Shown: positions 175 through 26,318 of the stretch, one piece after another
Position numbering within the stretch: the first letter of the stretch is position 1
Layout: each line of letters opens with the position of its first letter
Assembly: GCF_040938485.1 (NCBI RefSeq)
Contig: NW_027271660.1
Span: forward strand, 1,302,001 to 1,366,000
Length of the DNA stretch: 64,000 nt
Reading direction: 5' to 3'
Source: Diadema antillarum
Lineage: Eukaryota
Notes under the pieces: model-generated
The model's database searches: none
Seen by the model: only the letters and a program-made list of their open reading frames with translations
Told to the model about the DNA's origin: nothing
Program-made: the position numbers and the translations under genes

Positions 175-292
175 GAGGGGGAAAAAAATCCCTCCCACAC
201 CCTCGCTCGCGCGCACATTCGCGCGCCGAGATGCCAAAAGTCACGAAAATCTCACTCCATTATGTAAAAACTTTTTGGACTTGACATCCCTG
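175..292 (-). mobile_element. Partial hAT-like MITE, inverted copy of the 3997-4297 family
   Basis: The reverse complement begins CAGGGATGTCAAGT...GAGTGAGATTTTCGTGAC...GCATCTCGGCGCGCG and matches the left half of 3997-4090. Confidence 0.6.
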
Positions 293-642
293 CGACGGTT
301 TTGGTCTTCTACCCAGGGTTTTCTAGTCCCAGTGCAGCACTAGAACTTTACCCAGTGTCCACGCACCAAAGGACACTAAACCTTTTTGGAGGGAACCCAC
401 TGTTGTCAGGTGACCTGGGGAAACACCAAAGAGGTTCATAGAACCTCTTTGGGAAAAACCCAGGGCGTATCACAATACGGGTCTCACCCACTGAACTCTC
501 TGTTCAGTGGGCATCATCACCTCCCTGGAAAATCATATTGTTCAGGACCTCCCGCACGCACACACATGTCCAAATTACTTTAGCTTTTTTAGTAATCGCG
601 TGTCAATCGGGATGCTTCGAGTGAAGTACCAAGTTACGAGAA

Positions 643-768
643 ATGACCTCGAAAGACTTCTATTATTGTAGCTTATGTCGTCAAAGTGACATCAGAGGAC
701 GGAAACACGTGTATAGCAAGCAACACAAGAATCGTTTGACCTTTGTTCTTCAAAAATTTGGAGCTAAA
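643..768 (+). CDS. CENATAC: CENATAC exon 1 (42 codons, first zinc finger); missed by the ORF track
   Basis: ATG at 643 and donor AAA|GTAAGT at 769. [42 protein letters not shown] resembles human [30 protein letters not shown]. Phase 0 fits the acceptor TTTCAG|ATC at 24229. Confidence 0.88.
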
Positions 769-3700
769 GTAAGTGAACTGAGCTAGAATTTACGTTTTTA
801 TGTGATGTAGATCTAGATCTATTCATACGTAATCGCATGCCTACTACTAGTATGATACACTAGACCAACTATACTAGTATACAGATCACAGTGTAAACTC
901 ATATTGAATGCGCAAACTACACGCACGTCGCACGTGCACCACCATTACTCGCGACCCGAGACTCCTAGAGTAGATCCTCGCCTCGGCTAGCAGCTCTCTG
1001 CTAGCTCAACTCAATCATCATCAGCTAGCTACTGATTTTGACCGAAAGATCGGTCTGTATATCTGGTCCCTGGTCGTCGGGGAATGTTACGCGGAGACTG
1101 CGTCTGGCTTCACCGATCCCTACGGAGGAGAGCGATAACGTAAAAATATAAAAGACTCCTCCGGACAGACGCGAGACGGATCTTTCTGTCTAGCCGGGTG
1201 TTACTACACTAGACACTACCACGGTACCTAGCCAGATCTAGTTTACTGATCATGGGTTCTTACCCGGCCCAGTAAAGTAAGTAGGCCCTAAGCCGTGGCT
1301 ATGAAATGGCTGAGTTTCTCAAGTCGAAGAGCATGCACGCACGGGATCGGGAAGGGAGCTTTTTTGGAAGTGTCAGAATTCAGCTCTAAAGTAACTAACG
1401 TTTATACACGTTCATGTATAGATTATTATATAAAGGTAAAGCCCAAACACATGAAACAAAGTTCTGGTAAATTTACGCCTGCAAAAGTTGTCAAATTTCG
1501 CTCCCAAATGTGAACGTATGCCTATCCCTACGGTAGGAAATGTGCGGAATAACGCTGTAGATAACAAGATATTCGATGGGTAACGACGAAAATGCGAAAT
1601 ATATTAACTAAAAAGGTTCAGTCTCAGAACTTCCCTGAATGGGGTCAGGCTAAACTCGGACTCGGGAATAACTCGGCCTCGCTTTGACGGCGGGATGAGT
1701 TGTATTTGGTTGTCCCTCTGGATTGTACAGTGTTATACTATGGGAGCAACCTGTATAAACTACATTTGTAGCGCTTCGCGTTCTGGCTACTCGCAGTAAT
1801 GGTCCGAGTTGTTACAACACGCGCATCAAAAACTTCTTTTGCATGCATGCAAAACTAGTGTGCACCTATCAAGCACCTCTAAAAACAAAGACGCTTGATA
1901 AACAACAAAAACTTCAAAGACCGCGCGTCTCAGCAACTGAGGTGATGTGCGTATTGATAGGTTTGAGGACCGCGCGTGCTGTCCATTTGTTTTGTACAGG
2001 ATTAGCACGCACTTTCCTGTCTGTTCATTTAGGCCTCGTTTGGTATTATACAGTAGAACATGGCGATCACGAACTGCGTGTAAATTGTCTGAAATAGGGT
2101 CGAGATTTCCCTGAGACCGAGTTAGTCTAACGTTAGAGGCTTCTGTTCTGGAATAAAACTTAAAAGTCGGTTTTCCGACTTTTATTATTTTTCTCAAAAT
2201 ACCCCAAAATGACTCATCATTCCAGCAAACCGTGTCAGCCAGGTACAAATTTTGTAAGTTTCTTTGTAGACTCTTTCGATATATTGCAGGCAAATATGAA
2301 ATTGTGCCAGACGGGTTCTCAAGCCCTTACCAGAACTTTGTTTTCACTTTAATAGAATTCAGAGTAAATTTAGATGTTCTATAGAGGGGTTTAACAACAC
2401 ATGCGTGTGTCTTCACTATCCAGCCCCAAGTGTGTGTTTGTAATTCTCGCTATCGCCATCCGCCAGTGATGTAAAAAGTACCCGGATGTTGATTTAAACG
2501 TCATTTACAGTGCATTATGGGATACGAGTAGTCCGGTGGCAAGTCACTTCCGTTCATACACGCGTGATATGTGACTATATACAACCGAATGTATTCTACG
2601 TGTACTTACTGTTTTCTCGACTTGAATTTTAGCTTTAATATGATTTGAAATTTCTCCATTCTTAAGAAATTGTTGTTAAAATATGATTATGGGTTGTTAC
2701 TGCAAAGCTGCCATGTGTTGTTCACACGACAATACGACTATGGGTTGTTACTGCGAAGCTGCCGTGTGTTGTTTGCACGACAATAAATGAAAAAATTCTC
2801 CAGAAATAGGACCTTTGTGCCTTACTGGCATGCGAGACGTGACGTGGCTGCGTGGGTAAAGTTTGCGGGTGACTCAACAGCGCATCCGCAGCGCGCGTTC
2901 GCATGTGACTTACTTGATTGGAAGAAATTGCTTCAGAGTTGTACTAGACGGGATAAGTTCGAGATCACGGTTCGTTCCCGATTGTGTTCGCGGCACCTCG
3001 ACAGAGAACAAATAAAAACAATGGGCATTCCATGACGATATCATGCGGGGGCTATACATGTAGCTGCAGTGTGCGAGTATCACAGGCCTGGCCACTGGCG
3101 CTGGCTCAGGTACTGACTACAGCCGCCTACTGTACTAGTATCCCTGGTGGGTGCGGCGCTATAGATAAGGTACACACATGCGCACGCTAGCGCTGTGCAA
3201 AATATACCCCGCCCCAGACGTGCCCCAGTACCGGAAGTGCAATAAATCTTGACGAAAAAGCCACATCCGGGTACTTTTAAACGTCATTGGTGTTAGCGAG
3301 AATTAATTCGAGGGATCGACAATAGCTGTAAGATATTTGCCGATGGTGGCGACCTTTTTTTTTTTTTTAGCCTTTTGGTTGTGATGCCTACTTCCGGTAT
3401 CGGTGCAAGCGTACAGCTGTTTGTATTGTGTGCAGCGGTGATCACTATGTACTACATGTTGCATTTCCTGTTGTGAGAAAGCAATATCATTGTGCAAACA
3501 GGTCACGCTGTTTAAAAGTAAGTAAGATATTGGATTTCAAATTTGTTCATAAAAAGTGGTTTTGTAGTACCAATTTTGTGACGATGGGCTTCCGTTGTGA
3601 AGCAGCGATGTGTTGGTCTGAGGAAAGTCATCACTCGGAGCCATCCGCTGCGGTCACCCTACGCCGCTTGTGCAGGGATTCTTCACGATCACAGGGCTGT

Positions 3701-6700
3701 ATCACATCGTACATGGTCACGGCTTTCGATGCAAGACTGAGGAGCTCGTCTCTCCGTTTACCATTGCATGGTACGCCTCTGTCAGTCAAAAACTTACGAA
3801 GTTGGGGGACAGTCATCCTCTGCAAATCTCTGTTCTCAGAACCGTCCATAATGATGGATGAAACGACAAAACAAACTGATAGAAATCGATGAATTCTCCG
3901 TGTAGCAATTTTCAAGCAGAGTATACTCGTATATACCGGATGTACACAGCACAACCGGAAATTCGACCCGTGGTAGCCAGGACTCACGGCGACCAACATA
4001 GATGCCAAGTTCAAAAAAAAATTTATGAGTGAGATTTTCATGACTCAGCATCTCGGCGCGCGCGCATGTGCGTGAGCAAGGGAGCGAGGGAAGGGTGTGA
4101 ACTGGTGCCTACTTAAATGACCATTTTTTACCTATTTTGAAAGACAAAAGGGAAACATGCCTTCAATTACAATTCTCACTTTAATTCTTTAAGCTATGCT
4201 CCCAATGCGTGAGAAAAAGTGGTGTCATGCGTGAGATCGTGAGACAGACCCTAAAGGCTTGAGTCTCACTCACATTGCGTGACACTTGGTAGCTCTGGAC
4301 CAATCAAAAATAAGCATTTGATACAGCCCTCTAGCGGCTAAATACTTATATTTATTGTCGATCCAGCGAATTGGCCATGGCCAAAGGGATGTTCCTCCTA
4401 GTAAGTCCTCTCCACCACTAGAGGGCGAACTATACAATGGTGTCTGAGATTTCATTGGGCTGCCATTACCCACTTTGTAATTGCAGACTTTGCGTACCGA
4501 AGTACCATTTTTACAACACGTATTTGAACTTTTATGTGAGTATGCACTTCTGGATTTGGCTGCTCCTCGGTTGCTCGTTTGCTAGCGTGTTAGCATGAGG
4601 GGTGAGGCTACCACCGCCTTGTCGTCTTCCAGTGCCCCCTGGGCCCTGTGTGCTCACAAAACAATAGTAAAATTTTGATAGTACAGGACGTATGCATACT
4701 CCACACTCTACAATGGCGGATTCACAGGGGGGCGCACCGGGCGCGCACCCCCTCTTTGTTATTTGTTAAAACAAAAAGAAAAAGAAAAAGATGAAACCCA
4801 GAAGTAGTACCAGACATATTGTTTGCGCCCCCCTCCCCCCTTACAGAATTCATGGATCTGCCCTGCTCTAGTAGTTAAGTTACTGGGTGAAAGCTCTTTA
4901 GCCAGGGCCTGCCAAGTCGCTGGATACAGCATACACTGTACATGTACATGTATGCAGAGCCACATGCATGTAAACACGCAATGTTGTTTAGATGGTCTAA
5001 TACTATAGGACTAATCATGGCGCTAGTGCAGTTTTGCACCAACCGGGTGCCTGAATTCAATTTTTATGGCATAGAATTCAATCTTTAACTCAAAATGATG
5101 ATACATGAACCGGGTACCTGATTTCCAGTTTTGTGGCATATGTGTAAAATTCAATCTTCAACTCAAACTGTATGCGAACACTTTTCCACATCTCTCTCTC
5201 AGCTTGTCGTCTCTTTGGGTCCTCGAACAAAACATTGAATTTTGTATGGCTTCTTATCACCTCACAGTTTCTTCAGAATTTAGTGCTACACACATTTCAA
5301 AGACTTTCTGGGGGAAACAATAATACTGTAGGTGTGGCTTGTCTGGAATAATTTCTTCCAGTTTAAAGGACAAGTTCATCTTCATATAAGTGTGGATTAA
5401 GTGAATGCAGCAATATTATTAGAACACATTAGTGAAAGTTGGGTGAAAATCAGACAATCCGTTCAAAAGATATGAATTTTTAAATTTTCTATGCAGTCAC
5501 TGCTGGATGAGAAGACTACTACAGCGTATGATGTCACATGCATATGACAAGGAAAATATTAGAATTTCACAAAATTTAATTTTTTGAAAAAAGTGCACAT
5601 TTCCTCTACCTGTCACTGTTGTATGTTATTAAAGGGTAATATTGTTCCCCCTGCTGTCTGACAGAGGCAAGACAAGCATTCTTTTATCATGCGAGAAAAG
5701 TGAAAATATGTTGAATTTTCCTTATGTTTTCTCCATAGTGTTGTACACATGTGACATCACAAGCTGTGGTACGTAGTCTTCTCATCCAGCAGTGACTGAG
5801 CAGAAACTTGAAAAATTCATAACTTCTGAACGAGTTGTCCAATTTTTCCCCAAACTCTCACTGATATGTTCTACTTATATTGCTGCATTCACTCAATCCA
5901 CATGTCTATGAAGGTGGACTTGTCCTTTAATTGGAATGCCTACCCCATAATATGGTAAATACAATTGTAACACACATCAAAACTGTCTGTTCACAGTGGG
6001 CGGGGTCAGACGGGCAAAAGAGCCAGAAGTTTAAGATTGCAAAGTCTTTGTGATCTTTTGCTGCCCGGTCAAACTGGTAGCCAAACTTCTCGATCTTTGG
6101 ATCACAATGTTCTCTAAAAGTCATTAGTGCGCGTACATAATGTAGGCAAGGAGAAAGAAAGAGCACGCTTTCTGATTGCTAGTGATTGTGACGTAACAAT
6201 GAACACCTGTGCAACACAATGGTTGTGTAATTTCTGAAGCACTGCCAGAAAATAGGTGGTTGGCGGTTCATATGAAAAAGATCACAAAGTTTTAATTTCG
6301 AGCATTCACTCTGGCAAAAGATCACAAAGTTTGGTGGTGATGGGGGAAATGCAGGTATCCCTAGTTGGGATGGGAAGTTTGGTGATAATTTTCACAGAAA
6401 GTTTGTGGTCACAATGGCGAAACAAACTTCTTGATCTTTTGCTGTTCTGACCACCCCTTTCATAAGTCAATTAAGCAGAGTACCCAATTAAGTGGTGCAT
6501 ACAGCTGTACCCTATTACAAAATTGTATGTGGAGACTGCATACTTGTAGCTAAGGTAAGTAAAGCCTGGCATCTGGAGGGTTTGAATGACTGTGAGTGTG
6601 CTTGTGTGCTACTGTCTATAGCCTACAGTTCTGGTATATTTTTGCTGTGTATTTAGTTGTTATGAATTATGGGTATCAACTTTAATGTGTATATTCTCAG

Positions 6701-9700
6701 CTTCCAAAAAGTTGTCCCTGGGTCAATCCACGTCAAATCATCCAATTTTCAGAAAAGTTGTCACCCGACCCCCTCCGATTTTCTTTAAAATCGCACCAAA
6801 TGTTCTCCAAAGTGTCTGACGGAAAATCCCAAAATATTTTGCCCCAAGGTCAATTGGTTGCTAAGATACAGCCTCACATAGCAACCAATGCGCATTCCAA
6901 AATATGAGTCAAAAGAAAATTATGCATTTTTGATTGATTGTGGTAGCATGGATATCTATGCAAAAGTGTTCATTATCTGGAAATTGAGAGAACTTTATAG
7001 TCTTTGCAAGAAAAACTGACTGTGACGCGAAATTGACTTTTCGTTAACGTGCACGAGGTCACCGAAAATGGTGTTAAATGTTAATTTCCAAAATTTTAAT
7101 GCATATTTAGAGGCTAATATCTTCCACATTTCATCATCTTAGGTTCTGAAATATTATGCTGTTGAAGGCTTTGACTTGCTCAGTAATTTTGAAAAAAATC
7201 AGCGGATTCGTGCTCACAGTTTTTACGGAGAGCGCCCTCAAAGTTGACAAAAATGAAAAATGTGCCAAATTCAAGGTCACGGATCACCCTTTGTCCCACC
7301 TAGGAATGGCATCAAGTTTTGTGTATTGGTAGACATTTACCTATACTTTCTTGGGTTACCAAAGAAATTTTGCTACCGAAATGTTCAATGGTAAATTTAC
7401 CCCACTGAAAATGGTGGTAAACGGCCAAATTCCCATGAAATATCACAAATTGGGTTTAGAGGACATTTCAAATGTCCATGCTTTCAAGACGAAAAGCCCT
7501 AGCCCTGTGATATTTGCTGTAGGGGTAGTCTGTTATTTAAAACAAGTGCACAGCACACTTTTAGCTTCAGTGCTTGTCATTTGACTCAAATGGGCAAAAT
7601 TGCTATTTAAACATTTCCTTTAAAGTAGACTTTACAGGTGACACCTGTATTGTCTGCCTCCATGGAAAAGGTTAGTGTGTACCAGTACTTTATAGATCAT
7701 CACTCATTTTATGGCCATTCTAAGACTGTGGTTCTCAATTGCAAATTCAACAAATTTACAGTGTATCTTTTACAAGCACCAACTTTGTGAAGTATGCCCA
7801 CAAAATACCAAAGTATTTAAAGGGTCCATGTGTTTGTTGTGTGAAAGATTTTTAGATAGAGAATGCACAGCCATAATCTACTAAACTAGCCACACACACA
7901 CACACACACACACACAAAACTCTTTACATATTAGAAATTAAACTGTTTGATTTTTAAGTCAACATACATTGTAGACCCTGTACACATGTTTGACATTGAA
8001 ATTTGGACATTATTATACCTCTCCTTTCACATCCAGACTTACCGGTAGTTTTCTCTTCACAATGACAGGATCATGTCCTTTCTTAGTTTCAGTTTGCTGT
8101 GTGCTGGTCAGACTTTTAATTCACACTGTTCATACTTTTCATTGTACTGAACACTCTGCAGTTTCAAGGTATTGCCACAAGTTTGGATACATAGTGCATG
8201 TGTCAGCAGCATGCTTTTACAACTAGAAGATTTCAAGTACATTTGTCTTTCTCATACTGTAATGGTACTTAGCTGCCTTTACTAGTGATAGTAGAGTACT
8301 CAATGTAGTGATGCAAACTAAAATAAAGAAATTCAGTACTTTAAATTTGCTCAGTGCTCGCACTGGATTTCAGTGACTTACAAATGTAATGCTTACAAGT
8401 AGTAACTGCTGACCACACATCACACATGATGTATTTTCATCTCGTCTAAAATGGCACACACACACACACACAACTCTATTAAGTAAGTTATACAACGTGT
8501 AGTATACAATGTACAGCAAGTATTGTGCTTGGTGTATACAAATATGCAACAAGGCTGCCTTGTTGATTTGTTTTTTCACCAATGAGGATGAAACATATAT
8601 TTTCACAAGATTTTTGCAATTTGACACCAAAGTTATCATAAATGCACTCATGCCTGTCTGTTCATAATATCTTCACATGTTGTTGACTCTTTATGTGCCA
8701 CGTTTGCATGCGTCACTCAGTCAATGGCGTGTCAAGTTCGCATATTCTGCTCAAATGCACAAATCCTCCCAACTGATCGATAAATCGCCCAATGCTACAG
8801 CGCAATGAAAGTGTTTCTCGCAATTCTATTCCTGTCACATACATTGCATACCTTGCACTTTGCATTGTATGTAGTAATTGCCTCTGAAGGGTGGTCCCTA
8901 CAGGCTTTGCTAGTAAATTCTCAGTTCCTGTCAATGTTTTGTGTGCAAAAGTCATGCCTTTACATTTCCAATAATGTACAGTGTAGATTCTGGTCAGTTG
9001 AAGGAAAAAACAATAGATTCGTCTTACAATTTACCTTACAGCAGAGCATGGCATTTTCTCTACAACTTTACTCGTTGCATGTTCAAGAAGATGTATAGAA
9101 GTTACATACATGTAGATTTAAAAAACAATGTTCCCCAAAGCATGACTACATTACCATCACAGAGTAATGTGACATGCAGGGAATTCACACCATGGCTCAT
9201 ACATGTAAAGAGATAAATTTTGGGCTCAACAGTGGTTTGCAAAATTTACAAAAATACCAGTACCACCAGCTTTTACAGTACAATCAAGTGTGACAACCAT
9301 ATGTGTATGCCACATCATTCACATACATTTGTATCACCCACTGGTAAATAAAGAGACTCTGCTCACACTGTTATTATTATTATTACTGCCCATCTCTCTG
9401 GAATACCAGTTATAATTTCTCTGAAAATCTATCATCAAAATGTTCTACAGCACTCCATATAATGACAATTGTGTGCACAACAAGTGACAGATATCCTCTG
9501 CTCATAATTCAAATGTCATGTTCCTATTGTATTGATAGACAAGTGTTTCAGTAGGAGAAATTATGATGAGCATAACATGGTGTACAATGTACATTGGCAT
9601 TAGAAAAACATTGTCACTTAGCTGTGTACAATTGTATTAATCAAGATGAGAGCTCGGTGATCACTGCACACGTCTCTGATCTGATTCACAGCACATGATC

Positions 9701-12700
9701 TTTCCTTGCACAGCTGCCAATGAACCCCTGACAAGCCTGTCAAAGATTCCTGTCACCCAAGAGGCAGAGACTTTCAACTCACTGCACGGCCAAACTTCAG
9801 TGGTTGTCAGCTATCACGGCCAAGATGTCGCGGGAAGACAAACCCAAAATGCTACGACTCTTTGAGGAGACTTTGACCAAAGACCAGCTGAATGATCTCA
9901 TCCACAGCCGTAAAAAGCCTAGTAAGTGTACAGTGTAGGCTGCATTACACGCTCTACAATGGTCATTTGAACTTCTATCACGAGACCAGGAAACAGTTGG
10001 CAGATTTGTAAATGAAGGGTAGATTTACAGCTTTAAAGATAGTATAAAGTTTTGGTACCTCAAAAGTTTCCTTGAATTTCCTTGTCTTAGTTTGTGTTTC
10101 AGGTGAAAGTACCTTTCATATAACTAACACTGTGAGACTTTGTACTCGCCCCAAAGTGCTCTCATCAATAGTAATCATGCAATAATGGTTTCGTACAATA
10201 CGTGTATATTGATTGTCGCGGTACCTCGTCAAGTCAAACTGACGGCTCGTTCGAATTTTTCAGAGCCCGCTCTGCTCTGGTACGAAACCATTATTGCATG
10301 ATTACTAAGACATGAGAGCACTTTGGGGCGAGTAATTCTCACAGTGTTAGTTATATGAAAGGTACTTTAACCTGAAACACAAACTTAGACAAGGAAACTG
10401 AGGGAAACTTTTGAGGTACTAAAACTTTATATTATCTTTAAACTGAAGAGATTCTTGTATTTAAAAATATGACTCATTTGAATTAGGTGTTTCAAATATG
10501 CTGAAGTGATAGAAGATCCATCTCTTAGAATGTCACTATTGTGGTAAAGGCTTTTGTGTCATGGAATTTGTAAATATGGCAAAGTCTTGTTTTCATTTTA
10601 ATAAGGAAAAAGTGTAAGTTGATGATCTCATTTTACAGGGATTCATTAATTTAACCCATCAACAACAAGCTGATTTTGCCACACGGGCAGGCATATATGG
10701 GAAATGTGAGTTGTGACAACTCACATTTCCCATATAATACATGTGTACGCCTGCCCAAGCATACTCAGGACTAGTCTTCAACAGGTTTAAGTTGGCACTT
10801 TGCGACACATTTCATGACAAATCTTATGGCAGAGTGGCTTGAAATCTATGGCTCACAGTGACCTGAATATCAACAAAAATATTGAAATTACTGTTCATCC
10901 TTCAAGAACTATTTTTACTGCTCCACTTTTAAAGTGTTATGATTTTCCTTGTCAGTAATGTGTTTAAGTTGTCTTTGCTCCTGTATCTTCAATAGCAGTA
11001 TTACAATTCTAGATAGAACTCACACTGTATGCGGATCATCTGCTCTCTGACCTTGTTTTATTAAAGGGACTGTACAGTACTGGTTGCAGTGGGGATTCAT
11101 GTTTTGCACATTCCTTAGACCCCATTTACAGTGCGAGGCTCGGCCGTGGCTCGGCCGCAGCCGTGCCCAGCCTCGCTTCAGTGTAAACACGCAAAAGGCC
11201 AAATGCGAGGCCAAAATTGGCCTCGCTCTGGAGGTGGTCTTGGCCGCGGCCGAGCCCGGCCTTTTCTTGGTGTAAACGCAAACTGGGCCAAATGCGCGTC
11301 CAATTGCGCGGCCAATTTTAGTCTGGCTTCCAAACCCTCTGCCTGTATCTTTCACTATTCAGGATATTAACCCCCTCAACGTCGAAAACTAGTATAGTTT
11401 AAGGTGGTTTTGTCCTGCAAAGGATTCTTTCCTTCGGCAAAGGCCTTTGCCCGAACGGCGACTTCGTCGCCACGGAATTCATTTGGCAAAGGGTCTGAAA
11501 ACCAGACAATACCAAATTGCATTTGTTTACAAGCAGAGCGCCACTACGACAAACCTCTTACGAAATATGAAAGAGCATGTAATTTTAAGAAGGATTCAAC
11601 GTTTATTTGATGAAAATTGGTTTTCAAATGGCTGAGATATCCAAAAAAGTGATAATAATAAAAGGCGACAAGCCACGCCTTTTATTAGGATCTCTTTGTT
11701 TCACCCCGTTTTTGGATATCTCAGCCATTTCAAAACCAATTTTCATCAAATAAACTTTTGATACCCCTTAGAATTGCATGCTCTTTGACATCTCATAGAG
11801 TGGTTTCTGAATATCTCGCAAAACGTTAAAAGCTAAATCTTCACCTTGACCAGAACTGCACACACCCTTTAATCTCCCAACGTATTTTTTTTCCCCAACA
11901 CGTACATGTATGCTTACACATACTGTGTTTATTATTATATCAAAAGAGCGTAATCAGTTTTTGATTTACAGGTGTGTGTGTGTGTTTGTGTATGCATGTG
12001 CCTATGTTTGCTGGTTTGTAAATGTGCATGTTCTTATAAGATACGCCTTATATTTAGCAAGTCTAAATTTTTGTGAATCGGGGTTACAAAGTACAAATTA
12101 TTTTTCTACATGCTTTGGATCAAGAGTAGCTGTGTTTTACTATAGTGTCAATAACAGACTGTACAGTTCTGACTGAGGTGAGGATTTAGCTTTTATCGTT
12201 TTGCAAGATATTCAGAAATCACTCTATGGGATGTAGAGAGCATGAAATTTTAAGGGGTATCAAAAGTTTACTTGATGAAAATCAGGTTTATTTGATGAAA
12301 ATCAAGTTTATTTGATGAGAATCGGTTTTGAAATGGCTGAGATATATCCAAAAACAAGGTGAAACAAAGAGATCCTAGAGGCATGGCCTGTCAATGTCAC
12401 ATTTTATTATTATCACTTTTTTGGATATCTCAGCCATTTGAGAACCAATTTTTATGAAGTAAAGGTTGAATCCTTCTTAAAATTACATGCTCTTTCATAT
12501 TTCATAAGAGGTTTCTCATTATCTCACTTACCAATATTATAAACCTGAATCCCCACCTGAACCTTGTACTGTACACTAGCATCACAACTTCTCCACACCT
12601 CCAATGCAGCGTCCTTGTTTTCTTCATGTGTGCGTTCACTGGTTCCACATGCCGTGTAATTTGTCAGACCTGTGTCATTGTGTGAAGTCATAGTTTTGTA

Positions 12701-15700
12701 TAGTGTGTGTTTGTGTGCACTTACCCACGGTGGAAAACGAGGACATACACATGAACTTTACATTTAAACCAAGGACACACAGCGAACCGAGGACGTCCTC
12801 GGTTCGCAGACCATTCCTGCTTTTGCATATTTACAAAGGTGTAGGGGTACATGTTTGTAGGTCCTCGATTAACATTACTTTAATACTGTACACCTGTAAG
12901 TCCTTGGTTGACAAGATTCCTCCTGTTCCTACACACAGGTCCTTGGTTATGTGGTAAAATTCTTGTGGGTAGAACAGGTCCTCGGTTTCCATTATAGACG
13001 CATATCATGTGTGTGTGTGTGTGTGTGTGTATGTGCACTGCATGTTTGTGTGTAGTAGAATTGCATAATATCCAAAGATAAGGCCATGGTGTAATGACTG
13101 GATCTGGTATCTTTATGTGGTGTCTGCATATATACAGTAACATGATGTATGTCCTTTTTTTTTTCTTCAAGAAAACAATGAAGAGTGTGACTGTGTTAAA
13201 GATTGTAAATGCAGACTAGCTTTTTGTGTCATATTGTAATGTCATTTGCCAACAGCAGTGTTTCATGAATAAACAGCAGTGACACATACATGTGCACACA
13301 GTTTGTAACTCTGTTTTGTAGTGCAGTTGCATGCTGCATTAATGTCCAGCCATAGTACAATGTAATCCCAGTGGGAGTGAAATTTGACCAAAATTACAGT
13401 CTATAGTCTAAAGTACCATAGCTGGAGGCAGTTTCTCCAGTCCTAAGGATATCCACTCAAGCGGAGTTAGGATAATGTTGTTTTCACAAATGAGGAGATC
13501 TGTTGTAGGACATTTTCGCAAAATGTTGTTTCTGCAAATTGACACCAAAGCTATCATACAAATGTAAGTGTACTACTTCCTGAGTGCATAGCAAAATATT
13601 TTGCGTGTTTTTAAATTCGCAGTCCAACTCTGATTGGCAAAATTTGCAAAGATTTAACCCTTGGAAAATAACAGCTTGTACAGCATGTGTGAAGCTTGCA
13701 TACATTGTACATTCTAGTCCGCATGCAATCAAATTAAGTTGATAATTTTGATGTACGTGTCGAATAAGTTCTTTTTTTATTAATTCTGTCCTAAGTGTAC
13801 ATGTACAGTGTAAGTCAAGGAAGCAGCCAAATTATGATTGTTGTGGCGTACAAGTTGTAGCTCTTCCTGGCACTCATTTGTACCAGGATGTTTGCAAGAT
13901 TGTACTTTTGAGAACACAAAAGAATTTGAAGTAATTTTTTTCTTTGTCAATTTCTTCTTTTTTTTTCTTTTGTCAGGTCACTGGGAGGATGGTGTTGTGT
14001 CCTACTTCCGAGTCTACAAGATCATTCAGATGCTGCGTGAGGAAAACAAACCATGTACGCCACACCTGGTCACCGCCATTGATGTCCTGTCTGATGGCAA
14101 GTCCAAAATTCGCAACCAGTCTACCTACGATTTCTGCAAATACGTCAAGTTTCAGGTAGAGGACCATGTGGACCGAACTGATGAGGAGCTTCAGCAACAG
14201 GTGGAACGTCTCATGCCTGGGTGCCTTCCCATTGGTCCAGAGTGTGAGTCTCTGGGTATTACAGGAGACATATTATTTGATGAGGAGAAATACTTCAAGG
14301 AGCCTATTCCTAGAGATCGCATCACAAACCGAGTTATGTATGAACTCAGTCAGTTCCTACCACGTGTCCTTGAGAACCAACAGAGTATGGCAAAGTGGCT
14401 GAAGAAGATTTTGCACCTGCGAGATGACCATGTTCCTTCCGTGGACTTAATCACAAAATGGTGCAGTGTTCTCCACAAAGAAACGTCTCGCAAACGACGT
14501 TCTAGCATGTCTCAAGCTCAGCAGTACTTAGAGGAAAAATTTTCCTTTACTGATTTCAAATTTGAGGATCCTCAGAAGGAAACATCTGAAAAGACAGATG
14601 CAGATGCCAATGAACCTGCACCGCAAGATGAGCAGGATCAGCCAATGCAAGTTTCAGCTGAAGGAGATTCGAGTGCTACGGCAAAGGCAGGGGATGAGCC
14701 AATGGAAGCTGATTTTTCAGGGAATGAAAATGGCAGTGCAGAAACTGTAACTGGCATTATAGCTGAAGCACTGGACATTCTGGACGAAGGAGAGTGCCAG
14801 AAGGAACAGGATGTTAGTGGAGAAAAGCTTTCTCAGACAGCTGTAGTGGACAAAGATAGTGATTTACAGGTTGGTGATATCACCAGACAGGATGGAGATA
14901 ACTCTGCTGCTGTCACCTGTGATGACTCCACACATGAGCAGAATGAGGAAGAGCTGAGTGCTACCACAAAAGACAAGTCCGGAGCAGAGCATCTTTTCCC
15001 TAAGTCTCCAAAAAGTGCAGCAAGGATGTCAACATTTGATGAATCCAAAGATTCAGGACGTGTGTCAAAAGTGAAAAGTGACAGCAAGAAAATTGCCAAA
15101 AAAGATGTGCCAAAACCAAGTTCAAAAGGAAGTAAAAAGGCAGCTCTTGGCAGAAACAGAAAGAAATCCTCAAACATTGGATGTGATGACTCGGATAATG
15201 ATGAGATTTCTGACAAAGATGAGGTCACTAGTATGACCGGCAGAAAACCTGCGAATGGTGCCCTAGATAGAGCCACCTTGCATAAAAATTTAGCTAAAGC
15301 AAACAGAATCATCAAGACAGTACTGCGTGTTGTATCAAGACTAAAAAAGGAAATGCATGTGACAATGAATTATCTTGAAACTGAAGCCAGTAAGCTGTGT
15401 GATGATCTCAAACATGAACAAGAACGCCTTGAAAAGGCAAAGAGACTCATAGATAATAGCAGTGTCAGTGAAGGAGAGGAGACAGAGGAAGAAGATGCCG
15501 ATGATAGTACGGAAAAAAATACAAGGGCAAGTGGGAATAAGCGTAGGTCCTCCAAGAACACCAAAATGATCACAGTACAAGTAAAACCAGGGGTTAAAGA
15601 TACCCTGAGGAAGTCATTAGTGAGACTTAGACCCCTTCCCTGTCAAAGAGATGGAGATGGCAGTGATATTAGTGACTTGCATGACTCAGCATCCAGCAGT

Positions 15701-18700
15701 GATAGTGACATGAAGTCAAAAATGAGCAGGGCAGAGAGAAAAGTTATGGCCCACACCAAATTAGTGAAAGAAAGCTCACCACGTAAGGGTGTAAGCAGTG
15801 CCAGGTCCAGGTCCAAACCAAAAGTTACTCGTAATCGCAATGCAGTCGAATCCTCGACATCAGCACAGTGTAGTTCAACAGCAGAGCTACAGAAACCCAC
15901 AGGATTGAAGTGTGAGAGTGGTGAAAGTCCAGGAAATGATGTGAATGATTTTGATAAAGCAAAATTGTTTTCAAGTAGAGTCTGTGTTAGCCTTACCAAG
16001 CTAAACCAGAAACAAATTGAAAAGGCAGAGAGAAGAAATGATGAAATGATAGAGGTTGAGGAGAGTGAGGATGACTCTTCCAGTCGCAAGAGCAGCAGAC
16101 AAAGAGCAGTGCAGAAGAGTAGGTCTAGAGCCAAGAGGTTAGAGAAGGCTCCAGAGAGTGATTCAGAGACTGAGCCATCTGAGGAGGAGGAGGAGGAGGA
16201 GGAGGAGGAAGACATGCCTTGGACTCCTGCAAAGTTGGCAAAATCAACCCACACAGACACAGACTCCAGTGAGGACCACAGCAAAGGAACAACAGCCAGA
16301 AAATCCTCACGCATGACTAGGATTCCCCCTGGTAAGAACAAATCTCAAAAAAATAAAGCTGGAGAGAAGGAGACCAGAAAGGCAGCTGCTTCGAAAGGTA
16401 GTAGGTCAAGGACATCCAGAAATGCTGGCCTGTATGACAAAGACGCAGAGTCTTCTGAAGAGAACTGCAGTGATGAACAGAAAAAAACAAGATCAGCTTC
16501 TTCAAAATGTGAAGGAGTATCGAAAGGTGATAGACAGCAACAGAATAAGCAGAGCAGCAGTGAACCCCCTCCCTCCAAAGAGAAGCCCAAAAAACGGTCA
16601 TTGGATGACTTTGTGAAGGCACTGAATTCACCAAAAAGAATCAAAATGGGCACTGAGAAGAAAATGCCAAGTATGAATGCAAGAAGCAGACGCTGTAAGG
16701 ACATTCAGATTGTGGAGGATAGCCCTACCAATGAAGATGACTCTGACTACGAAGACAACGAGGATGATGACTTCCTCGAGAAGGCAACCGAACAGGAACT
16801 GCAAAGGCTGAAGGAAGGGGAAATTGGTAATAGAAGCCAAGGAATGCAGAAAGAAGCTGGTATTGAAGGAACTATAGTCAATGGGGAACAAAATGCCACA
16901 GTTAAGACTACAGATGATGTAAAGACAAACAAGCCAGAGTCAAGCAATGTCTCTCAGATGGATACAGAGGTAGATGTATGTCCTCCTTTAATTGAAAATC
17001 AAGTAGATAAAAAAAGCAGTGATAGTGTACGGGAAATAGCAAGCTCTGATTCCTGTACAGAAACCAAGGTCAACAGAGGAAAGGAAGGCATGATGGGCAG
17101 TGAACAAGTTGTAAAAGCAAACTGTGCAGAATCAGGTTTTGATCCTCCCATGGAAGTTGAGGGAGCTGAAAATCCTCTTTTAAATGAAATCCAAGAAGAA
17201 GAAAGAAATATTGTAGAGGTAACATCAAAATCTAATTCTGACACAGGAAAGAACGTAAATGGAGAACAGGAAAACATGAGCAGTGTAGAAGTTGTAGACA
17301 CAAAATATTCAGAACCAAGTCCTGATCCCCAGATGGACACTGAAGTAGATACAAGCCTTCTTTCAGTTGGAAAGCAAATTGAAGAAGACAAAACAGATGC
17401 AGACACAAGAGATGGAGAAAGAAAAGATCCAGAATCAAGTCTTGATTCCCAAATAGAAATGGAGATAGATGAAAGCCTTATTTCCAATGAAAAACAAGAA
17501 TTAGTGGTCAGTAACTCCAAAGACAAAATGAAAGGGGATATGAATGATGGAAGTAATCACAGAGTAAATGGACAAATTAAGGAGGGAGAGGATGTACGTA
17601 AAATGGATGTGCTGGAAGGGGGAGATAATAATTGTGATTATCATGGATTGGAGGAGGATTCTGGGTCAATTGAGAGCAAAGGGGAAGAAGGGCAGGAGAA
17701 TGCTGAAAGTAGCTTAGGCAGGGCAAGAGGCCATTCTGAAAGTGAAGAGTCACCAGTACAACAATCTCAAAACATTTCATCACACAGGAAAGCTGAAAAC
17801 GGCACTTCACAACGCAAGAAAAAGGCGAAGAATGAGCGGGGCAAAAATAACAAAGTGTCGAAGCCGGCCTTCCCAGGAGACAGTATTATTGGAAAACAGG
17901 TGAGACACCGCAGCAGCTTGGGCCATCCAGACATCTTCAAGTGGTACAAGGGCAAAGTCCTGCGAAAGAGCACTGCCAGTGAGCTGCTCAAACTTGGCCA
18001 GGAACACATTCAACACTTGAATAACTTGGTTACCATCTTTGCTGTAAAATATGAAGAGTATACTGATGTTAGTCATGAGGCACTGGAGGTTGCTTGGCGA
18101 AAGGGTAACCTCAAGATTGTGCCATAGAAATCATGGAGGAGTAGTTTCTGTCTGGGGATCCCTTTCTTCCCATTATGTATGTACAAAGGAATTACACAAC
18201 ACTCTGGAAGATTCACCCACAGAAGATGGTAATCGCACTTTACTATTGCTGTTTAGATGTACCCCAACTCTTATTGAACTCTTTCATGCAATTGATAGAC
18301 TTTTTAGTTCACTTGAGCCACAGGTTATTGCTGTAACTAATAGTTTGTTGTCTGGCATCCAGTGTCCTGTGTCTGCCATGCATTAAACTGTTGGTGAAAT
18401 ATCATGCATATAAACTTAATACATTTTCAGCTTCTTGATAACCCATAATGGAATCATCAAACCTGGCAGGTGACATCCTTTGGATAATAGGATTTCAACG
18501 TGGGCATCAAATTGGGGACCAATTTCACACTTTCTTCATCTTGAAATCACATCATCAAATTTTCACCAAACACCATTACTATTGCTAGGGAGATGTACTA
18601 TTTGTACAAATAGGCACCATGACCCTTTGGGCACCCCAGCCCCAATGCCCTGAAATTGGCAATCCTTGAAAAATCTTCTTCTCTAGAAGTCTTACCTGAA

Positions 18701-21700
18701 CTACATGGTGCAAGTTAGCTATTGTGATTGCGAAGCATGCTCCTGCCATGCTGTGAAATTGTTTGGTTTTTTTTTCTTTTCTTCACGAGTATTCTCATTG
18801 ACCAAATTCCCGTCTTTCCCCATTTAAGGATGACTGTCATAAGCTAAACGTGTTTTTTTTTTTTTTACATTGTTGATATTTTTGAAGGACAAATTCACCT
18901 TAATACACTTGTGGATTGAGTGAATGCAGCAATATCAGTAGAACACATCAGTGAAGGCTTGAGAAAAATCAGACAATTCATTTGAAAATTATGAATTTTT
19001 ACATTTTCTGTGCACTCCCTGCTAGATGAGAAGACCACTGCATTTTATCATGTCACATGCAATAAACGATATAAGGAAAATATAAAGGGAATTCCACATG
19101 AAAGTTTTTTTGAAAAAAAAAAAAAACCAACACCTTTCCTCTACTTGTTGCTACTTGTATCTGATGTATGTTAAGGGTAGTATGATTCCCCCTTCCTTCT
19201 GAAATTCACATTCTCTATTTAATGCTAGAATAGTGAAAACACGTTGAATTTTCTTTATACATGTCGTATGCATGTAACATCACATGCTGTGGTTGTCTTC
19301 TCTTTCAGAGATGGCATTACTTCAACTTCAAAATTTTATAATTTATGAACAAATTGTCTGATTTTCTTGAACTTTCACTGATGTATTTTGCTAATATTGT
19401 CGCATTCTGTCAATCCTTATGTATAATAAAGTGAACTTTTCCTTTCATGTTACAATTACTGATAGAAAAGTTTCTACTAGACAGTTATAACATGTGTCGA
19501 GTCTAAATTTTGCATGACATTGTTGTTTGTATTATTTTGTCGCTATTTTTGTGGGTATTTTTTCAACCATTGAAGTTGAATACGTGTTAGTCTTACAAAA
19601 ATTAGATTCTGGGATTGTCATAAGTGACTGTTGTTATACTTGGGGATCTGCAAGTTGTGTCCAGAAGATAAGTTGACAGTGAACTTCATTATGTGAAAGC
19701 ATGATTTGATACAAGTACACAGTGAGGTGACTTCAAAAGGAGGTCCCATCTTTACCCGTGAGGGCTCTCGCTCAGAGTGATCCTGCTATTATGATGTCAC
19801 AAAGTATGCTTGTAGGTAGCAAAATGTTTGTGTTTGCTTCGCATGAAGAGAAAATTTAATCTTTGAACAACTTCTAGTTGCATTGCTTGTGATATACGAT
19901 TGTAGGTGTAAAATTTTAAAGCTGCAGTTCGGTCATGCACAACGGTATGAATGTGGCTGGCAACTTGGTGGTAGATGTGTATCAGTTCATTGGGTAAACA
20001 TGTCAGATTTTATGTTCAATTCTGTACTTTGTATTCATGATTAAGTGTGTCTTTGCTTTAAACAATTGAAATGCAGAAAGATTGTCATTTTGTGTCATTT
20101 TTAAGGTGTATATGAGTACAGTGTAGATATCAAGCATCGATTTGTGAAAGTGATTTATCCCTGCGTGCTATTAGATAATGGCAACTGTTGGGCATAGTAG
20201 CACTTTTATGGAATGTGTCCTAGTTATAAAGAAAGAGAAACAAAGAAAGGTTTACTGGACTACCATTCTGCACAAGTTTTAATTTGCAATGTATTAACAT
20301 TGTGTCATGAATTTCAAACATTGTCGTCAGATAGTCTGTAGAGTTAAACAGAGAAATATGTGCACAGTGGAGTAAGCAGTCATGGTCCACATATTGCACT
20401 CCAGTGCTAAATTGTAAGTTTGATCTCATTGTACATGTAGGTATAGTACTGTATGTTGTTTCCACACACACACAAAAAGAAATGCACTGTAGTCCAGCAA
20501 GTTTCAATTTTATTTTGCCTTGCAACAAACCCAAGTCCAATGAATATATTATGTACAGTTTCTTTTATGTACTAGGTAGAAATGGATGTAAGTAATTCAT
20601 GCAAATCTTTTGGGTCATTTCTCGTGCTTACACCGTGAGAGGAAATTTGTAATAGTTTTTTGCACACTACAGTAGGCCTACAATGTGAGAGGTGTTTTCT
20701 TGAAATTTTGTCCTCTTGTGAGGTACACGTGCTGAAGAAGAGTCCTGAATATACTCAGGCAGGTGTCTACTGGAAATGCGTGTTATAGCAAAAATCAGTC
20801 CGTCTTCAACGGGTTAACAAATGGTGTCCGTACGTATAATCCAAACTGTTTTCACCATTACCAATCTGAATGGACATTGGTCTTGGGTTGTGACCAATGG
20901 TGTTTTGTATAGAATGTCTTATTGTGTCTTAAAAATCATCTTGAAGTCTTACCATGAGTGAAATTGTCATAGCTCATAACTTATGATAGAAGAGACACAC
21001 ATGTATGTTATGTATAAAACAAACAGAAGAGATACTGTAAACTTCTGTATCCATTTCAATGAGAATTTGTAAAGAGAACTTATGCACCATAGTACCACGG
21101 AAGAGAGAGAGAGAGAAAGAAGCCTATCAATATTCTGATTTATGCACCATGATTTTTGTGCATGTAATGATGACAAAAATTATGCATGAGACAACCATGA
21201 AGCCTTATAGAGACAGGCCTGGCCTTCTCTTTACAACTCATGTACATGTATGCATCCACTGGATCTACATGCAGGTAAGAGAATGTCAGTACATATGTAG
21301 CTAATAAAAATGGCTTGTAAACTGCATATCGTTCAAGAGCATATCATTCCATGAACATGGACTGTCGATGAAGAAACTCACCTTTGGAATAAGAAAGTAC
21401 ATGTAGGAGTATACCAGTTATGGGAGGCGGTATTGTGCTTGTTAATTTTGTGCAAATCAGTAGTCTTGCAAAAAAAGAAAGAAAAAAAAAGACCATTGGA
21501 AAGCACAGTGTGGCAGCCAGAAAAAGAAAAAAAAAGAAAGTGGAGCATGCATGTACACTGTACTTTTTTTTTTTCAGAAGACATTATATACCTTAATAAC
21601 AAATGTGAATGATGCAGGTACACTTCAATCCAATATTGTTCACCACGGATGTAACAAAATTCTAGACTTTTAGACTTCAGTCTGTATATACTAGACATGA

Positions 21701-22294: not shown

Positions 22295-23781
22295 AAAACA
22301 AGCTCTGAATTCTTAAATTTAACCATTCAATTAAAAAAATGATACACGTATGGGAGATTGTGACATGTTAACTATGTAACCAAGTGGAACCTGTGCCAAC
22401 TTTTTTTTTTATTCCTGAAGTGATTTGTTAGCTGTTACGAGAGAGAAAAAAAGTGAGTTCTCAGAGAGAGGAAGCCCTTTATGCATCAATGTAACTTGTT
22501 CAAAAAAAGTACATCATTGCTGTGACAAATAGAATTGCTGAGCTGCAGGGATTCACATTCTCTATTTTATTTTGCAAGAAATGAAACAAAACAATCTGCA
22601 CATTAATCTTGCTTCCTTATTTCTTGCCTTGAATGGGATTTAGTTGTCATAAAATCGATTTTTAGAAATGCCCAGCAAACTGAGCTACATTGTATGAGCA
22701 TCAACTCTGGTCAGTGCTAGGGGACTATCGAGTGAATCACTTTTGAAATGCATAGTACATTGTAACACACTGTTTGACTATGTAGTACTGTGTGTTGTGT
22801 TTGAACTTAGAATTGTACATATAAGAATAAGACATTCTTGTAATTTCCCTTCCAATTTATTGTTGAATATAAATTTGTATTTCTCTTTTTATGCCTCTGC
22901 CCCAATCGGTGTCAGATGCATTATTTCTGTATGTTGTAAGTATGAGAAGGGTGTGGCCAACAAAATTAATGCTGTACATTGGTGCTTAGATATTAAAAGA
23001 CAATTGTTCAGCATTGTTGAACAAACCTTTGGCATTGATCTTGTCCTTCATTGGACTAAGGTGTACATAAATTGTATTTGCTGTCATGATAAGATATTTG
23101 AAGAATGTGACAAAGATAGTGGAAATTTTTGTGTTGATTAATTCTTTTGGCTCAGCCTGTTTGGATGAATTTTGCCTGGCTTTAAAGGGGCATAGTCCCG
23201 GTAGTGTAGAGGGCGCTGTTGATGATACTGCCGATCACCATTAGCATTGATACGAAGATTACCGAAGTTGAGCTTTCATCAAGAGTAAAGTGCGTAGCTG
23301 TTACTAAGTAACGTTGCCTTCGTTGTCTTCTCTGCGCATCGCGCAGTCTATAGTAATGCCAGGGTGCGTGCATATGTGCTTGTTATTATGACATCACAAA
23401 AGAAGTTTGCTGAAGCTGTCACCCCCCTCAGCCGAATCATTAGCCGAACTGTGATCCGATCACTGACTACAGTGAATCAACTTCTTCGGACTCGGGGAAG
23501 TGGGCCAAAGCGTAAGCGCTAAAGAGTCGATAGCGTAGGTCTCTATAGGAAACTTGCACCGTGCGCCCGCGTACGCATGTAACTAAAACACCGGGACCAT
23601 GCACTTTTAAAAGCCCACACTGCAAAAATGTCCACTTTAGCAGTACTGTAATGAAAGAGAGTAAAGGAGAAAGAGTAGATATATGTATGTGAGATTGAAT
23701 TTTGGTTTTTGCTTGTAATTGAATAAGTTGATGAGAGTTGACTAATCTGTAAAGCAGAAGTGGCATGCATATGAGTTTGTA

Positions 23782-23838
<57 letters not shown>

Positions 23839-26261
23839 CCATACACATGTGATGGCATGTCTGGGCACTTGATGCCTTATAGTATGATCAAACTCCTACT
23901 GTCCTACATGTGAAATGGCCTCAGTCACCTCTTGTGTGTCAGGCTTTTAGTGATTCCAAAGTGCAAACCCAACCACATGCGGAAGTGATCCCTCCATATG
24001 CATTGTACATTATACATCATGACAACTGAAAACAACATGAACAGAAAAAAACAACAACAACTGACCAATTGGTATTTGTGTGTGTGTGTGTGAGTGTGAT
24101 TGTAATGGTAATTGTAAGCTACATGTGGCAGAGGGTCATGTAAAGAGCAAAAGCAGCATGTATTGTATCCATAGACTGCATTTTGAATGATCAGTGATTT
24201 GGGGCATTCATTCGCTTATTTCTTTCAGATCCGAGCAGCGGAGAGCCTGATTGGCTGTCCTGAGGTCATAGAAGGGTCGTTTGAGAAGGGAACAAACTAC
24301 TGGTGTTACCTTTGTTCCTGTGATGTGGAGAGACCTGCCCATGATGGCCAGGTTACACTCAAGTTGGCCAAGTTCATAGAGCACTTGTGCAGGTACATAA
24401 ACATACTGAATAGGGAGAATATACACGTAGTTATCTCTTACAACTGTACAGCTATATACCAGGGTATACAGTTTTGTACATAGGCCCACATCAACTGCTC
24501 ATGGTGCATGTATGTCTGTCTATCACATGTATACACAGGCATACATGTACCATGAGCAGTTAGTGGTCTCTCCCCCCCCCCCCCCCCCCCCCTTGCATCA
24601 ACTGCACATTAGTTCGCTATTAATTTGGCACCGACTTTCCCCTATATTTTTTAATGACTGTCGGATCTTTCAGTCAAAAGCTGTCATTTGCTCTCATTAA
24701 TCTTTCATTTCCTGTCTATAAATCTTTGTGTCTCCTACATCTCTTTCTCTTCCTTTTCTCTGTGAGATATATTGTCTGCCCTTTTCTTTCAGCTTTGTGA
24801 TCAATCTTGATCTACCCCTCAACCATTACATGCTTGTGTGTTATCGTTTCTCTCGGGAATCTCTTCGTTTTTTGTTGTGTTTTTAATCCACCAATTAGGC
24901 ATGGAATTATAGTTTTTAAAATGCTACTACACATTTTTAACAAAGTGTCATGTAAATTTACAAGTTTTGTGTTTTTACTGATTTCAGTTTGCTGTTTGTT
25001 ATAAGAGAACATCATGATAAGTACTTCTTGGGCAAATATGTTTGTGAATATTCCTCACTGTAAAAATAATAGGAAAGAAAAACAAACATACAAAATAACA
25101 CAAGAAATTGTACCCCATCACTTGATGTTTTTCTAACACACCTTCACACAGTGAGTCCCACAGTCTGGCTGCTCCAAAGTTCTACCGACTTCATCATGTT
25201 GAACCAGGCATGGTCAAGCAGCGACTGGTCTTTTCTCTTGAGGACTATGAGAGATTCAAGACCAAATTAGTCCAGGCCCTAGACCAATATGAAGACAAAA
25301 CATATGCCAAGCTTCAAGAGGTACAGAAACTCGCCTTACTGGAATTTCTCAAGCTGTACTATATTAGTTATCCTTGCAGGTATTACCGGTACATTTTCTT
25401 TTCCTATGTTACGCCTCGATATCATTCACACAATGATGTTAAATGACTTCATGTTCTGACACAAACCCTCCTCAAACTTCTTAAGAACTCTTTCATAACA
25501 AACACTATTAGTTGTATGATAGTAGCACAGTTGCACTTCAAGCCACTTTGGATATTGAACCTGTAAAATTGCAAAAAAAAAAAGGAAAAAAATAATAATA
25601 GTAAATGAAAAAAAAAAAATAAATAAATTGTATTGTAAATTAGGCCCTGCACCAAATCAACCAGCTTTAGAAGAAGCAATGCGGTTCAATGTCACCTTCT
25701 TTAATTAGTTTATTGCTCTTGTATATTGGTTTGTATTTGAATAAGTGTCTAAAGTATGCCTCTCAGGAAATCAAGGTTTTTTCAGGATTGGTTTTGGTTT
25801 CTTCCCTGCAGGAAGAGTTGAGAGCAGATACAAGTCTGCATAAACAAACAGGTAAAGCTGAACAAATAATAAGAATCAATGAAGAAGCATGAATTTATTG
25901 CTTTCGTAATGTTATAATTCACCATTGCAAGTCAGAACAGAAGGTTTATGTATTCTTGTTCTAAATGATGATGACTGCAGAGTGCGGCAAAGATTCGTAA
26001 AGTTGAAGCAGAGCGGCAAGCAGTTGTGGACAACCGTGAGGCATTCCCTGGCAGCCAAGGATGTAGAGTAGACACACATGTGGGCACAGCTTCTGTGGAA
26101 CATGGAGAGGGCAGTGACAAGTTTACATTGGGCAGGTGCAGTAAAAAGTCCTCTTGTACACCTTTCTTTTTCCTTTTTTTCTTTTTTTGCAATGACATGG
26201 AATAATTTATACCAGTTTTCAGTCACAGGGTATAAATTCCAGGTCAGTACATGTTATATAC

Positions 26262-26318
<57 letters not shown>

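Follow-up and report, generated by a model that had tools for sequence, protein, structure and literature searches.

A coding gene nested on the same strand in the first intron of sea urchin CENATAC: evidence for an ancient arrangement and a proposed mode of expression

Introduction

Does a complete coding gene lie, on the same strand, inside an intron of another gene, and if so, how long has it been there and how could two separate mRNAs be obtained from the one strand? This question is raised by a stretch of 64,000 nucleotides (nt) from the sea urchin Diadema antillarum, here called the window, which is a part of contig JBFRCO010000772.1 (GCA_040938485.1) and contains CENATAC (CCDC84), the gene of a minor-spliceosome factor. 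A prediction made from the letters of the window (the original prediction) placed a gene of two coding exons, encoding 1415 amino acids (aa), on the same strand between CENATAC exons 1 and 2, and its coordinates and exon structure proved correct. Based on the comparisons given below, we consider it fairly probable that the whole account is as follows: an echinoid-restricted, single-copy gene resides in CENATAC intron 1, it would receive a leader exon from farther upstream, and its output would compete with that of CENATAC. In the following, positions are those of the window unless a locus of another assembly is named.

The nested gene and the CENATAC exons

On the + strand of the window, positions 13838-18127 form an open frame of 1429 codons that holds the long exon of the nested gene; the length of the open reading frame (ORF) is far above the chance expectation, and the ORF is conserved as coding sequence (CDS). 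The first coding exon (9714-9921, +) consists of a 5' untranslated region (UTR) at 9714-9824 and a coding part at 9825-9921, which begins with the ATG at 9825, comprises 32 codons plus 1 base and is followed by the donor GTAAGT at 9922 (border 9921/9922). The intron (9922-13976, +; 4055 nt) is of phase 1 and ends with a polypyrimidine tract and the acceptor ...ttttgtcAG, with the AG at 13975-13976 (border 13976/13977), and the second coding exon (13977-18127, +) has 1382 codons plus the stop codon TAG at 18125-18127. The spliced product of 1415 aa is identical, letter for letter, to RefSeq XP_071505591.1 (P0010), which is named "uncharacterized protein [Diadema antillarum]". The gene itself, which the original prediction took as part of an undescribed arrangement, is thus already a RefSeq model, while the nesting is undescribed because the RefSeq models of CENATAC are cut short at the 5' end. 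It is noted that the intron contains, at about 11300-11900 and about 12300-12700, repeats of a high-copy element with inverted-repeat joints.

CENATAC exon 1 (643-768, +) contains the ATG and the first C2H2-like zinc finger in 42 codons, ends in phase 0 and is followed by the donor GTAAGT at 769; exon 2 (24229-24392, +), preceded by a phase 0 acceptor ...tttcAG, encodes the second zinc finger. Both exons exceed the gathering cut-off of Pfam PF14968 (25.3 bits), with exon 1 matching profile positions 1-35 (E=5.9e-10, 39.8 bits) and exon 2 matching, from its third residue, positions 38-88 (E=5.6e-8, 33.3 bits), and with exon 1 ending and exon 2 beginning at neighbouring profile positions (35/36), the borders being of phase 0/0. 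In tblastn searches exon 1 has a single copy in the window, and no exon 1-like sequence is found between 18127 and 24229. When the exon 1 of Diadema is compared with that of Lytechinus variegatus or Strongylocentrotus purpuratus, the proportion of nonsynonymous differences (pN) is 0.16-0.17 and that of synonymous differences (pS) is 0.82-0.90, giving pN/pS of about 0.19, and the frame, the Cys/His residues and the GT donor are retained across Diadema, Lytechinus and Strongylocentrotus. Moreover, neither acceptor of the nested gene is in frame with exon 1, and thus the coding constraint on exon 1 can arise only from its joining to exon 2.

These comparisons tell us that CENATAC exon 1 is, as judged from the sequence, genuine; the prediction of two genuine, in-phase exons is borne out by their abutment in the Pfam profile and by pN well below pS. 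The nested CDS, 9825-18127, lies wholly between these consecutive exons on the same strand, in a CENATAC intron 1 of 23.5 kb, and from the coding constraint on exon 1 we infer that this intron is spliced across the nested gene. There is no N in the window, and both D. antillarum haplotigs carry the same arrangement. A scan of the window for U12-type donors gave chance-level matches only, none of them in CENATAC. As a separate observation, the motif ATATCCTC, which is like a U12-type AT-AC 5' splice site, occurs at 9491-9498 (+), 220 nt before the acceptor-like site at 9714; with 7 matches in the window versus 7.2 expected by chance, this site is probably meaningless.

Conservation, selection and copy number

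Orthologues of the nested gene are present in Diadema setosum (91% identity), L. variegatus, Lytechinus pictus and S. purpuratus, and all five urchin genomes have a two-exon CDS with the phase-1 intron after the same codon and the donor at the same position. For S. purpuratus, RefSeq gives two transcript accessions for each nested-gene locus with one protein, which fits with UTR variants.

The order of the exons is likewise shared. In the second D. antillarum haplotig (L001), exon 1, the nested gene and exon 2 are located at 599-724, 10001-19617 and 25217-25378, respectively, and in S. purpuratus they are located at 7454-7567, 10001-17157 and 26183-26344 in locus L005 and at 7465-7578, 10001-18439 and 27744-27905 in locus L007. 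In L. variegatus (L002), exon 1 is at 6550-6663, 3.3 kb upstream of the nested gene, which starts at 10001, with exon 2 not within 10 kb. In L. pictus (L009/L008), exon 2 lies 13 kb past the stop codon of the nested copy P0011, and in D. setosum (L003), where the nested gene ends at 16175, exon 2 is at 22086, 5.9 kb downstream; in these two species exon 1 is not within 10 kb. In the window, L001, L003, L005, L007 and L009/L008, all of the exons share one strand. The lineages of Diadematoida and Camarodonta diverged more than 200 million years ago, at an early stage of euechinoid evolution. Since the order is common to Diadema and the camarodonts, the arrangement is ancient rather than a recent insertion. 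The lineage-specific insertion that had been proposed is thus contradicted by the same order in both S. purpuratus copies and by parts of it in two further species, exon 1 preceding the nested gene in L. variegatus and exon 2 following it in L. pictus; these findings place the arrangement before the Diadema-camarodont split. From the genome comparison, then, the nesting is genuine and of great age, and euechinoid sea urchins have conserved it.

Note also that the whole CENATAC/nested locus occurs twice per chromosome-scale scaffold in two of the species, with L005 and L007 of S. purpuratus being 1.37 Mb apart and 87-98% identical in aligned blocks, and L004 and L009 of L. pictus being 1.9 Mb apart. 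The doubled loci are either uncollapsed haplotypes or a segmental duplication.

Nei-Gojobori estimates of the ratio of nonsynonymous to synonymous substitution rates (dN/dS), which had been suggested as a check on the nested ORF, uphold it as a coding gene. Between D. antillarum and D. setosum, dN/dS is 0.38 for the whole CDS, 0.145 for the N-terminal 230 codons and 0.05 for the C-terminal about 100 codons; between L. variegatus and L. pictus it is 0.11 for the N-terminus and 0.09 for the C-terminus; and between L. variegatus and S. purpuratus it is 0.29 for the whole and 0.05 for the C-terminus. The part encoding the disordered middle of the protein is far less constrained (dN/dS 0.5-0.9). 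The nested gene is under purifying selection, strongest in the terminal domains. The copy number was estimated from the word depth over positions 9500-15499 in one public run of low-coverage genomic DNA (introns covered, splice joints absent). The depth is about 1-3 over the nested ORF and the unique part of the intron versus 165-640 over the intron repeats. Therefore, the nested ORF is single-copy and is not a member of a transposon family.

The nested protein

In the nested protein, Ser, Glu, Lys and Asp together make up about 42% of the residues. A conserved N-terminal domain of about 225 aa, predicted to be all-helical, is followed by a long, disordered, acidic/basic middle rich in these four residues, with a coiled-coil segment and three short conserved motifs, and then by a conserved C-terminal domain of about 85 aa. 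Together with the possible Tudor-like character of the C-terminal domain (see below), this makeup may point to a scaffold protein of the nucleus or of chromatin.

When 1.84 billion representative proteins were searched with an N-terminal-domain profile, four matched, namely D. setosum, L. variegatus, S. purpuratus and one metagenome fragment, which indicates, as far as this search goes, a family confined to echinoids; a word search with the C-terminal region gave matches in Diadema only. The metagenome fragment (P0006, 217 aa) is 55% identical to the Diadema protein and 44% identical to that of S. purpuratus. It is a third, divergent member of the family, and it comes from an 11.8-kb eukaryotic contig of the ENA metagenome assembly ERZ26222911 that was cut into prokaryote-style ORFs. 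Pfam gives no family for the Diadema, L. variegatus and S. purpuratus proteins and sub-threshold matches only for P0006, sequence and profile searches of PDB with both terminal domains give nothing significant, and ESM Atlas gives no usable match for the N-terminus. We thus have a protein that is restricted to echinoids, exceeds 1100 aa and has no known relatives, and whose two terminal domains are under strong constraint.

For the C-terminal domain there is one lead. Its nearest ESM-Atlas cluster is Spin/Ssty (score 0.89, 177/256 features shared), and by eye the motif pattern of its roughly 85 aa resembles spindlin-type Tudor repeats. It differs from the Spin/Ssty proteins in that Pfam PF02513 does not match the C-terminus of any of the five orthologues at E up to 10, PDB gives no match, and the AlphaFold2 models of the N- and C-terminal domains, with a mean confidence score (pLDDT) of 47 and 41 (40.7 for the C-terminus), are too poor for a fold search. 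The C-terminal domain may thus be Tudor- or Spin/Ssty-like, as a lead from embeddings that no HMM match supports.

Proposed pathway of expression

We now consider how the two mRNAs could be made. A CpG-rich island, probably unmethylated, extends over 200-4800, with an observed/expected CpG ratio of 0.8-1.3 versus a window median of 0.38. It covers CENATAC exon 1 and is the only island between exons 1 and 2 that is common to both haplotigs, the sequence around 9.4-9.9 kb being CpG-depleted, and in L. variegatus and S. purpuratus matching islands span exon 1 together with the 1-2 kb that follow it. The island is likely to be a promoter region. Immediately ahead of the nested gene lies a conserved non-coding block (9655-9713, +) that can be aligned in all five genomes (D. 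antillarum, D. setosum, L. variegatus, L. pictus and S. purpuratus) and that reads as a branch point (CTGAT) followed by a polypyrimidine tract and CAG. When L. variegatus is compared with S. purpuratus, at a distance where synonymous sites are near saturation, exon 1 and this block (84% over 58 nt) are all that can be aligned in the spacer of 2.3-3.3 kb. We consider the block to be a probable 3' splice site ahead of the first coding exon. Position 9714, originally given as the start of the gene, would then be an acceptor-like site rather than a transcription start, and with a conserved acceptor at 9713/9714 the nested mRNA would begin with a leader exon farther upstream. Spliced leader (SL) trans-splicing was considered as another use of the acceptor; it is unlikely because, to our knowledge, it has not been reported in echinoderms.

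The pathway that we propose is then as follows. The leader exon of the nested mRNA would most likely lie in or near the 4.5-kb CpG island around CENATAC exon 1, and would be spliced to 9714. That the leader arises from a separate start site in the island has, in our estimate, not quite an even chance; that it is CENATAC exon 1 itself is a tentative possibility. The nested mRNA would end at a poly(A) site 0.3-1.3 kb past 18127, where a pattern scan gives candidate signals over 18382-19430 (+), namely ATTAAA at 18382 and AATAAA at 19061 and 19425, the latter two being both within a repeat copy at 18881-19448. The CENATAC mRNA would be made only if the polymerase reads past this poly(A) site and the donor of exon 1 at 769 pairs with the acceptor at 24228, two good acceptors of the nested gene being skipped. 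Consequently in this scheme the two outputs would compete through the choice of splice site and of poly(A) site. It is plausible, though unproven, that the two genes use one promoter or adjacent promoters, as at the ChAT/VAChT locus. This deeply conserved pair is also present in S. purpuratus, a classic developmental model with abundant RNA sequencing (RNA-seq) and Iso-Seq data, and there the intronic polyadenylation and splicing can be measured against the expression of the host.

Several points weigh against this account. The RefSeq CENATAC models of three species begin downstream of the nested gene. In D. setosum and L. pictus, no exon 1 was found in the 10 kb that precede the nested gene, and the exon 1 homologue of L. 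variegatus (locus L002, 6450-6663) has, in that assembly, no in-frame ATG before an upstream stop codon. The block before 9714 could be a core promoter instead of an acceptor. The sole public run found is the low-coverage genomic DNA used above, so that the 768^24229 junction, the leader exon and the poly(A) site are predictions from sequence. Finally, exon 1 as the leader would put an upstream open reading frame (uORF) of 45-47 codons on the nested mRNA. As to the L. variegatus homologue, it is noted that S. purpuratus has an ATG at the place concerned; the missing ATG could reflect an indel in the assembly, a non-AUG start or a further upstream exon.

Alternative explanations

The alternative that survives best is in fact a special case of our account. 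In it, one promoter gives two outputs, with the donor of exon 1 being spliced either to 9714, which gives a nested mRNA with a uORF leader, or to 24229, which gives CENATAC. In its favour, L. variegatus and S. purpuratus share no conserved block from exon 1 to the nested ATG other than exon 1 itself and the acceptor block, and a single CpG island spans CENATAC exon 1. In all three lineages an in-frame stop codon follows 2-6 codons past the join, and hence no aberrant fusion would be made; by the same token, an in-frame fusion of CENATAC exon 1 with the nested gene is rejected. The use of both shared and separate promoters has a precedent at the ChAT/VAChT locus (PMC3053374). By contrast, the uORF, carrying the start codon of CENATAC, would strongly lower the translation of the nested ORF; leader exons that do not code for protein tend to be poorly conserved, and thus the invisibility of another leader in the alignments proves little; and in both L. 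pictus and D. setosum a distance of more than 10 kb separates exon 1 from the nested ATG. As a prediction from the genomic sequence, the shared leader seems to us possible and on the unlikely side.

A stronger form of this idea, to which we give a still lower chance and which we regard as doubtful, is that CENATAC exon 1 is bifunctional: under one promoter, the choice of splice site and poly(A) site would decide whether a minor-spliceosome factor or an echinoid-specific protein of chromatin type is made, and the start codon of CENATAC would act as a uORF that throttles the nested mRNA. If true, this would be a second, independently evolved unit like the cholinergic locus, kept for more than 200 million years.

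Next, there might be no nesting at all, in that CENATAC starts downstream of 18127, as in RefSeq, with the 1415-aa gene being its upstream neighbour and 643-768 being a relic or something else. This is what the RefSeq models depict. In D. antillarum the first CDS exon of the 317-aa model is placed at 21197-21274 (+; the CDS start 21373 of L006 corresponds to 21197 of the window) and reads "MKPYRDRPG...YMQ" followed by gt; the model of the second haplotig has 190 aa, that of D. setosum 255 aa, beginning with "MD" followed by gt, and that of L. pictus 181 aa, beginning with "MHIESLRE", and they all start downstream of the nested gene. However, these four proposed first exons are mutually non-homologous and none of them encodes the first zinc finger. 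The peptide of 21197-21274 has no CCDC84 similarity, and in D. setosum its frame is broken (-6/+8 nt) and its GT donor is lost, so that it is probably an ab initio patch for a start rather than a conserved N-terminus. If CENATAC began there, moreover, neither the low pN/pS of exon 1 nor its exact abutment with exon 2 in the Pfam profile would be accounted for, because, with exon 1 out of frame with the nested acceptors, only CENATAC explains its coding constraint. We therefore regard this alternative as very improbable, and hold to the nesting of the 1415-aa gene between exons 1 and 2; the chance that the RefSeq downstream starts are real, minor alternative starts has to be allowed for.

As a related observation, an older S. 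purpuratus model (P0008; UniParc UPI0002228FAE, 1543 aa) fuses CENATAC with the nested gene, being made of CENATAC exon 1, an extra piece of 28 aa, most of the nested protein (the part beginning with its second exon) and the later CENATAC exons. Both the downstream-start models and the fused model look like failures of gene prediction that are due to the same-strand nesting. With the present analysis the public annotation is corrected in at least three urchin RefSeq sets, where the gene on the same strand in intron 1 has caused the CENATAC models to miss the conserved exon of the first zinc finger.

The last alternative, that the ORF is transposon-derived or spurious or that the locus is misassembled, either of which the original prediction had named as a possible refutation, is scarcely credible: the low-complexity product without a Pfam domain and the high-copy repeats in the intron would suit it, but the ORF has single-copy depth and, as its only relatives at other loci, syntenic orthologues with the same intron phase in five genomes, its terminal domains are under purifying selection, Pfam finds no transposon protein domains, and the window without N, the two haplotigs and the chromosome-level assemblies of other species are concordant. 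An origin of the nested gene as a retrogene was also considered and is rejected, the CDS having a conserved intron.

Other features of the window

A short ORF on the − strand at 3631-3846, inside the CpG island, has a SAP domain (PF02037, 27 bits versus a threshold of 23.9). Both D. antillarum haplotigs carry it, while it was not found in the Lytechinus, S. purpuratus and D. setosum loci. It might represent either the beginning (first exon) of an antisense gene or a fragment left by a transposon. The repeat copy at 18881-19448 mentioned above has a dispersed counterpart at 5362-5931, the two being about 71% alike. A CpG-rich segment of about 420 bp at 23187-23605 is present in the haplotig of the window and absent from L001 and D. 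setosum, which makes it an insertion/deletion polymorphism a short way ahead of CENATAC exon 2. Far downstream, an ORF on the − strand at 63137-63562 has a WW-domain-like stretch that may resemble the N-terminus of CEP164, a neighbour of CENATAC at human 11q23.

Comparison with known systems

The urchin gene agrees with the CENATAC/CCDC84 family in that its exons 1 and 2 match PF14968 and encode the two N-terminal zinc fingers. It differs in having a first intron of 23.5 kb that holds another gene, and in that automated models omit its exon 1.

With respect to nested genes in general, the original prediction stated that most are antisense to their host. This does not agree with a survey of mouse and human, in which the orientations of nested genes are 'broadly similar' in frequency and long 5' introns are preferred (PMC11694760). 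Same-orientation nesting in long 5' introns is thus common, and the arrangement described here is otherwise ordinary: as in the same-orientation pairs of that survey, a complete coding gene lies in the long, 5'-most intron of its host on the same strand. What differs here is that the nested gene is a taxon-restricted orphan, that the host is a minor-spliceosome factor, and that the pair is conserved across euechinoids.

The classic precedent for same-strand nesting is VAChT (SLC18A3) in the first intron of ChAT, the cholinergic locus (PMC3053374; Eiden 1998, as cited there). There, as here, the nested gene occupies the first intron of its host and has the same orientation as the host, and this layout is deeply conserved. 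The cholinergic locus uses multiple promoters and alternative splicing, and in the urchins the conserved acceptor together with the one CpG island suggests something similar. The two loci differ in that the VAChT ORF has a single exon and the products of the locus act in one pathway, whereas the urchin nested CDS has an intron and the sharing of a leader is inferred only. The urchin pair is a further case of a known type of same-strand nesting, for which the cholinergic locus is the closest specific precedent.

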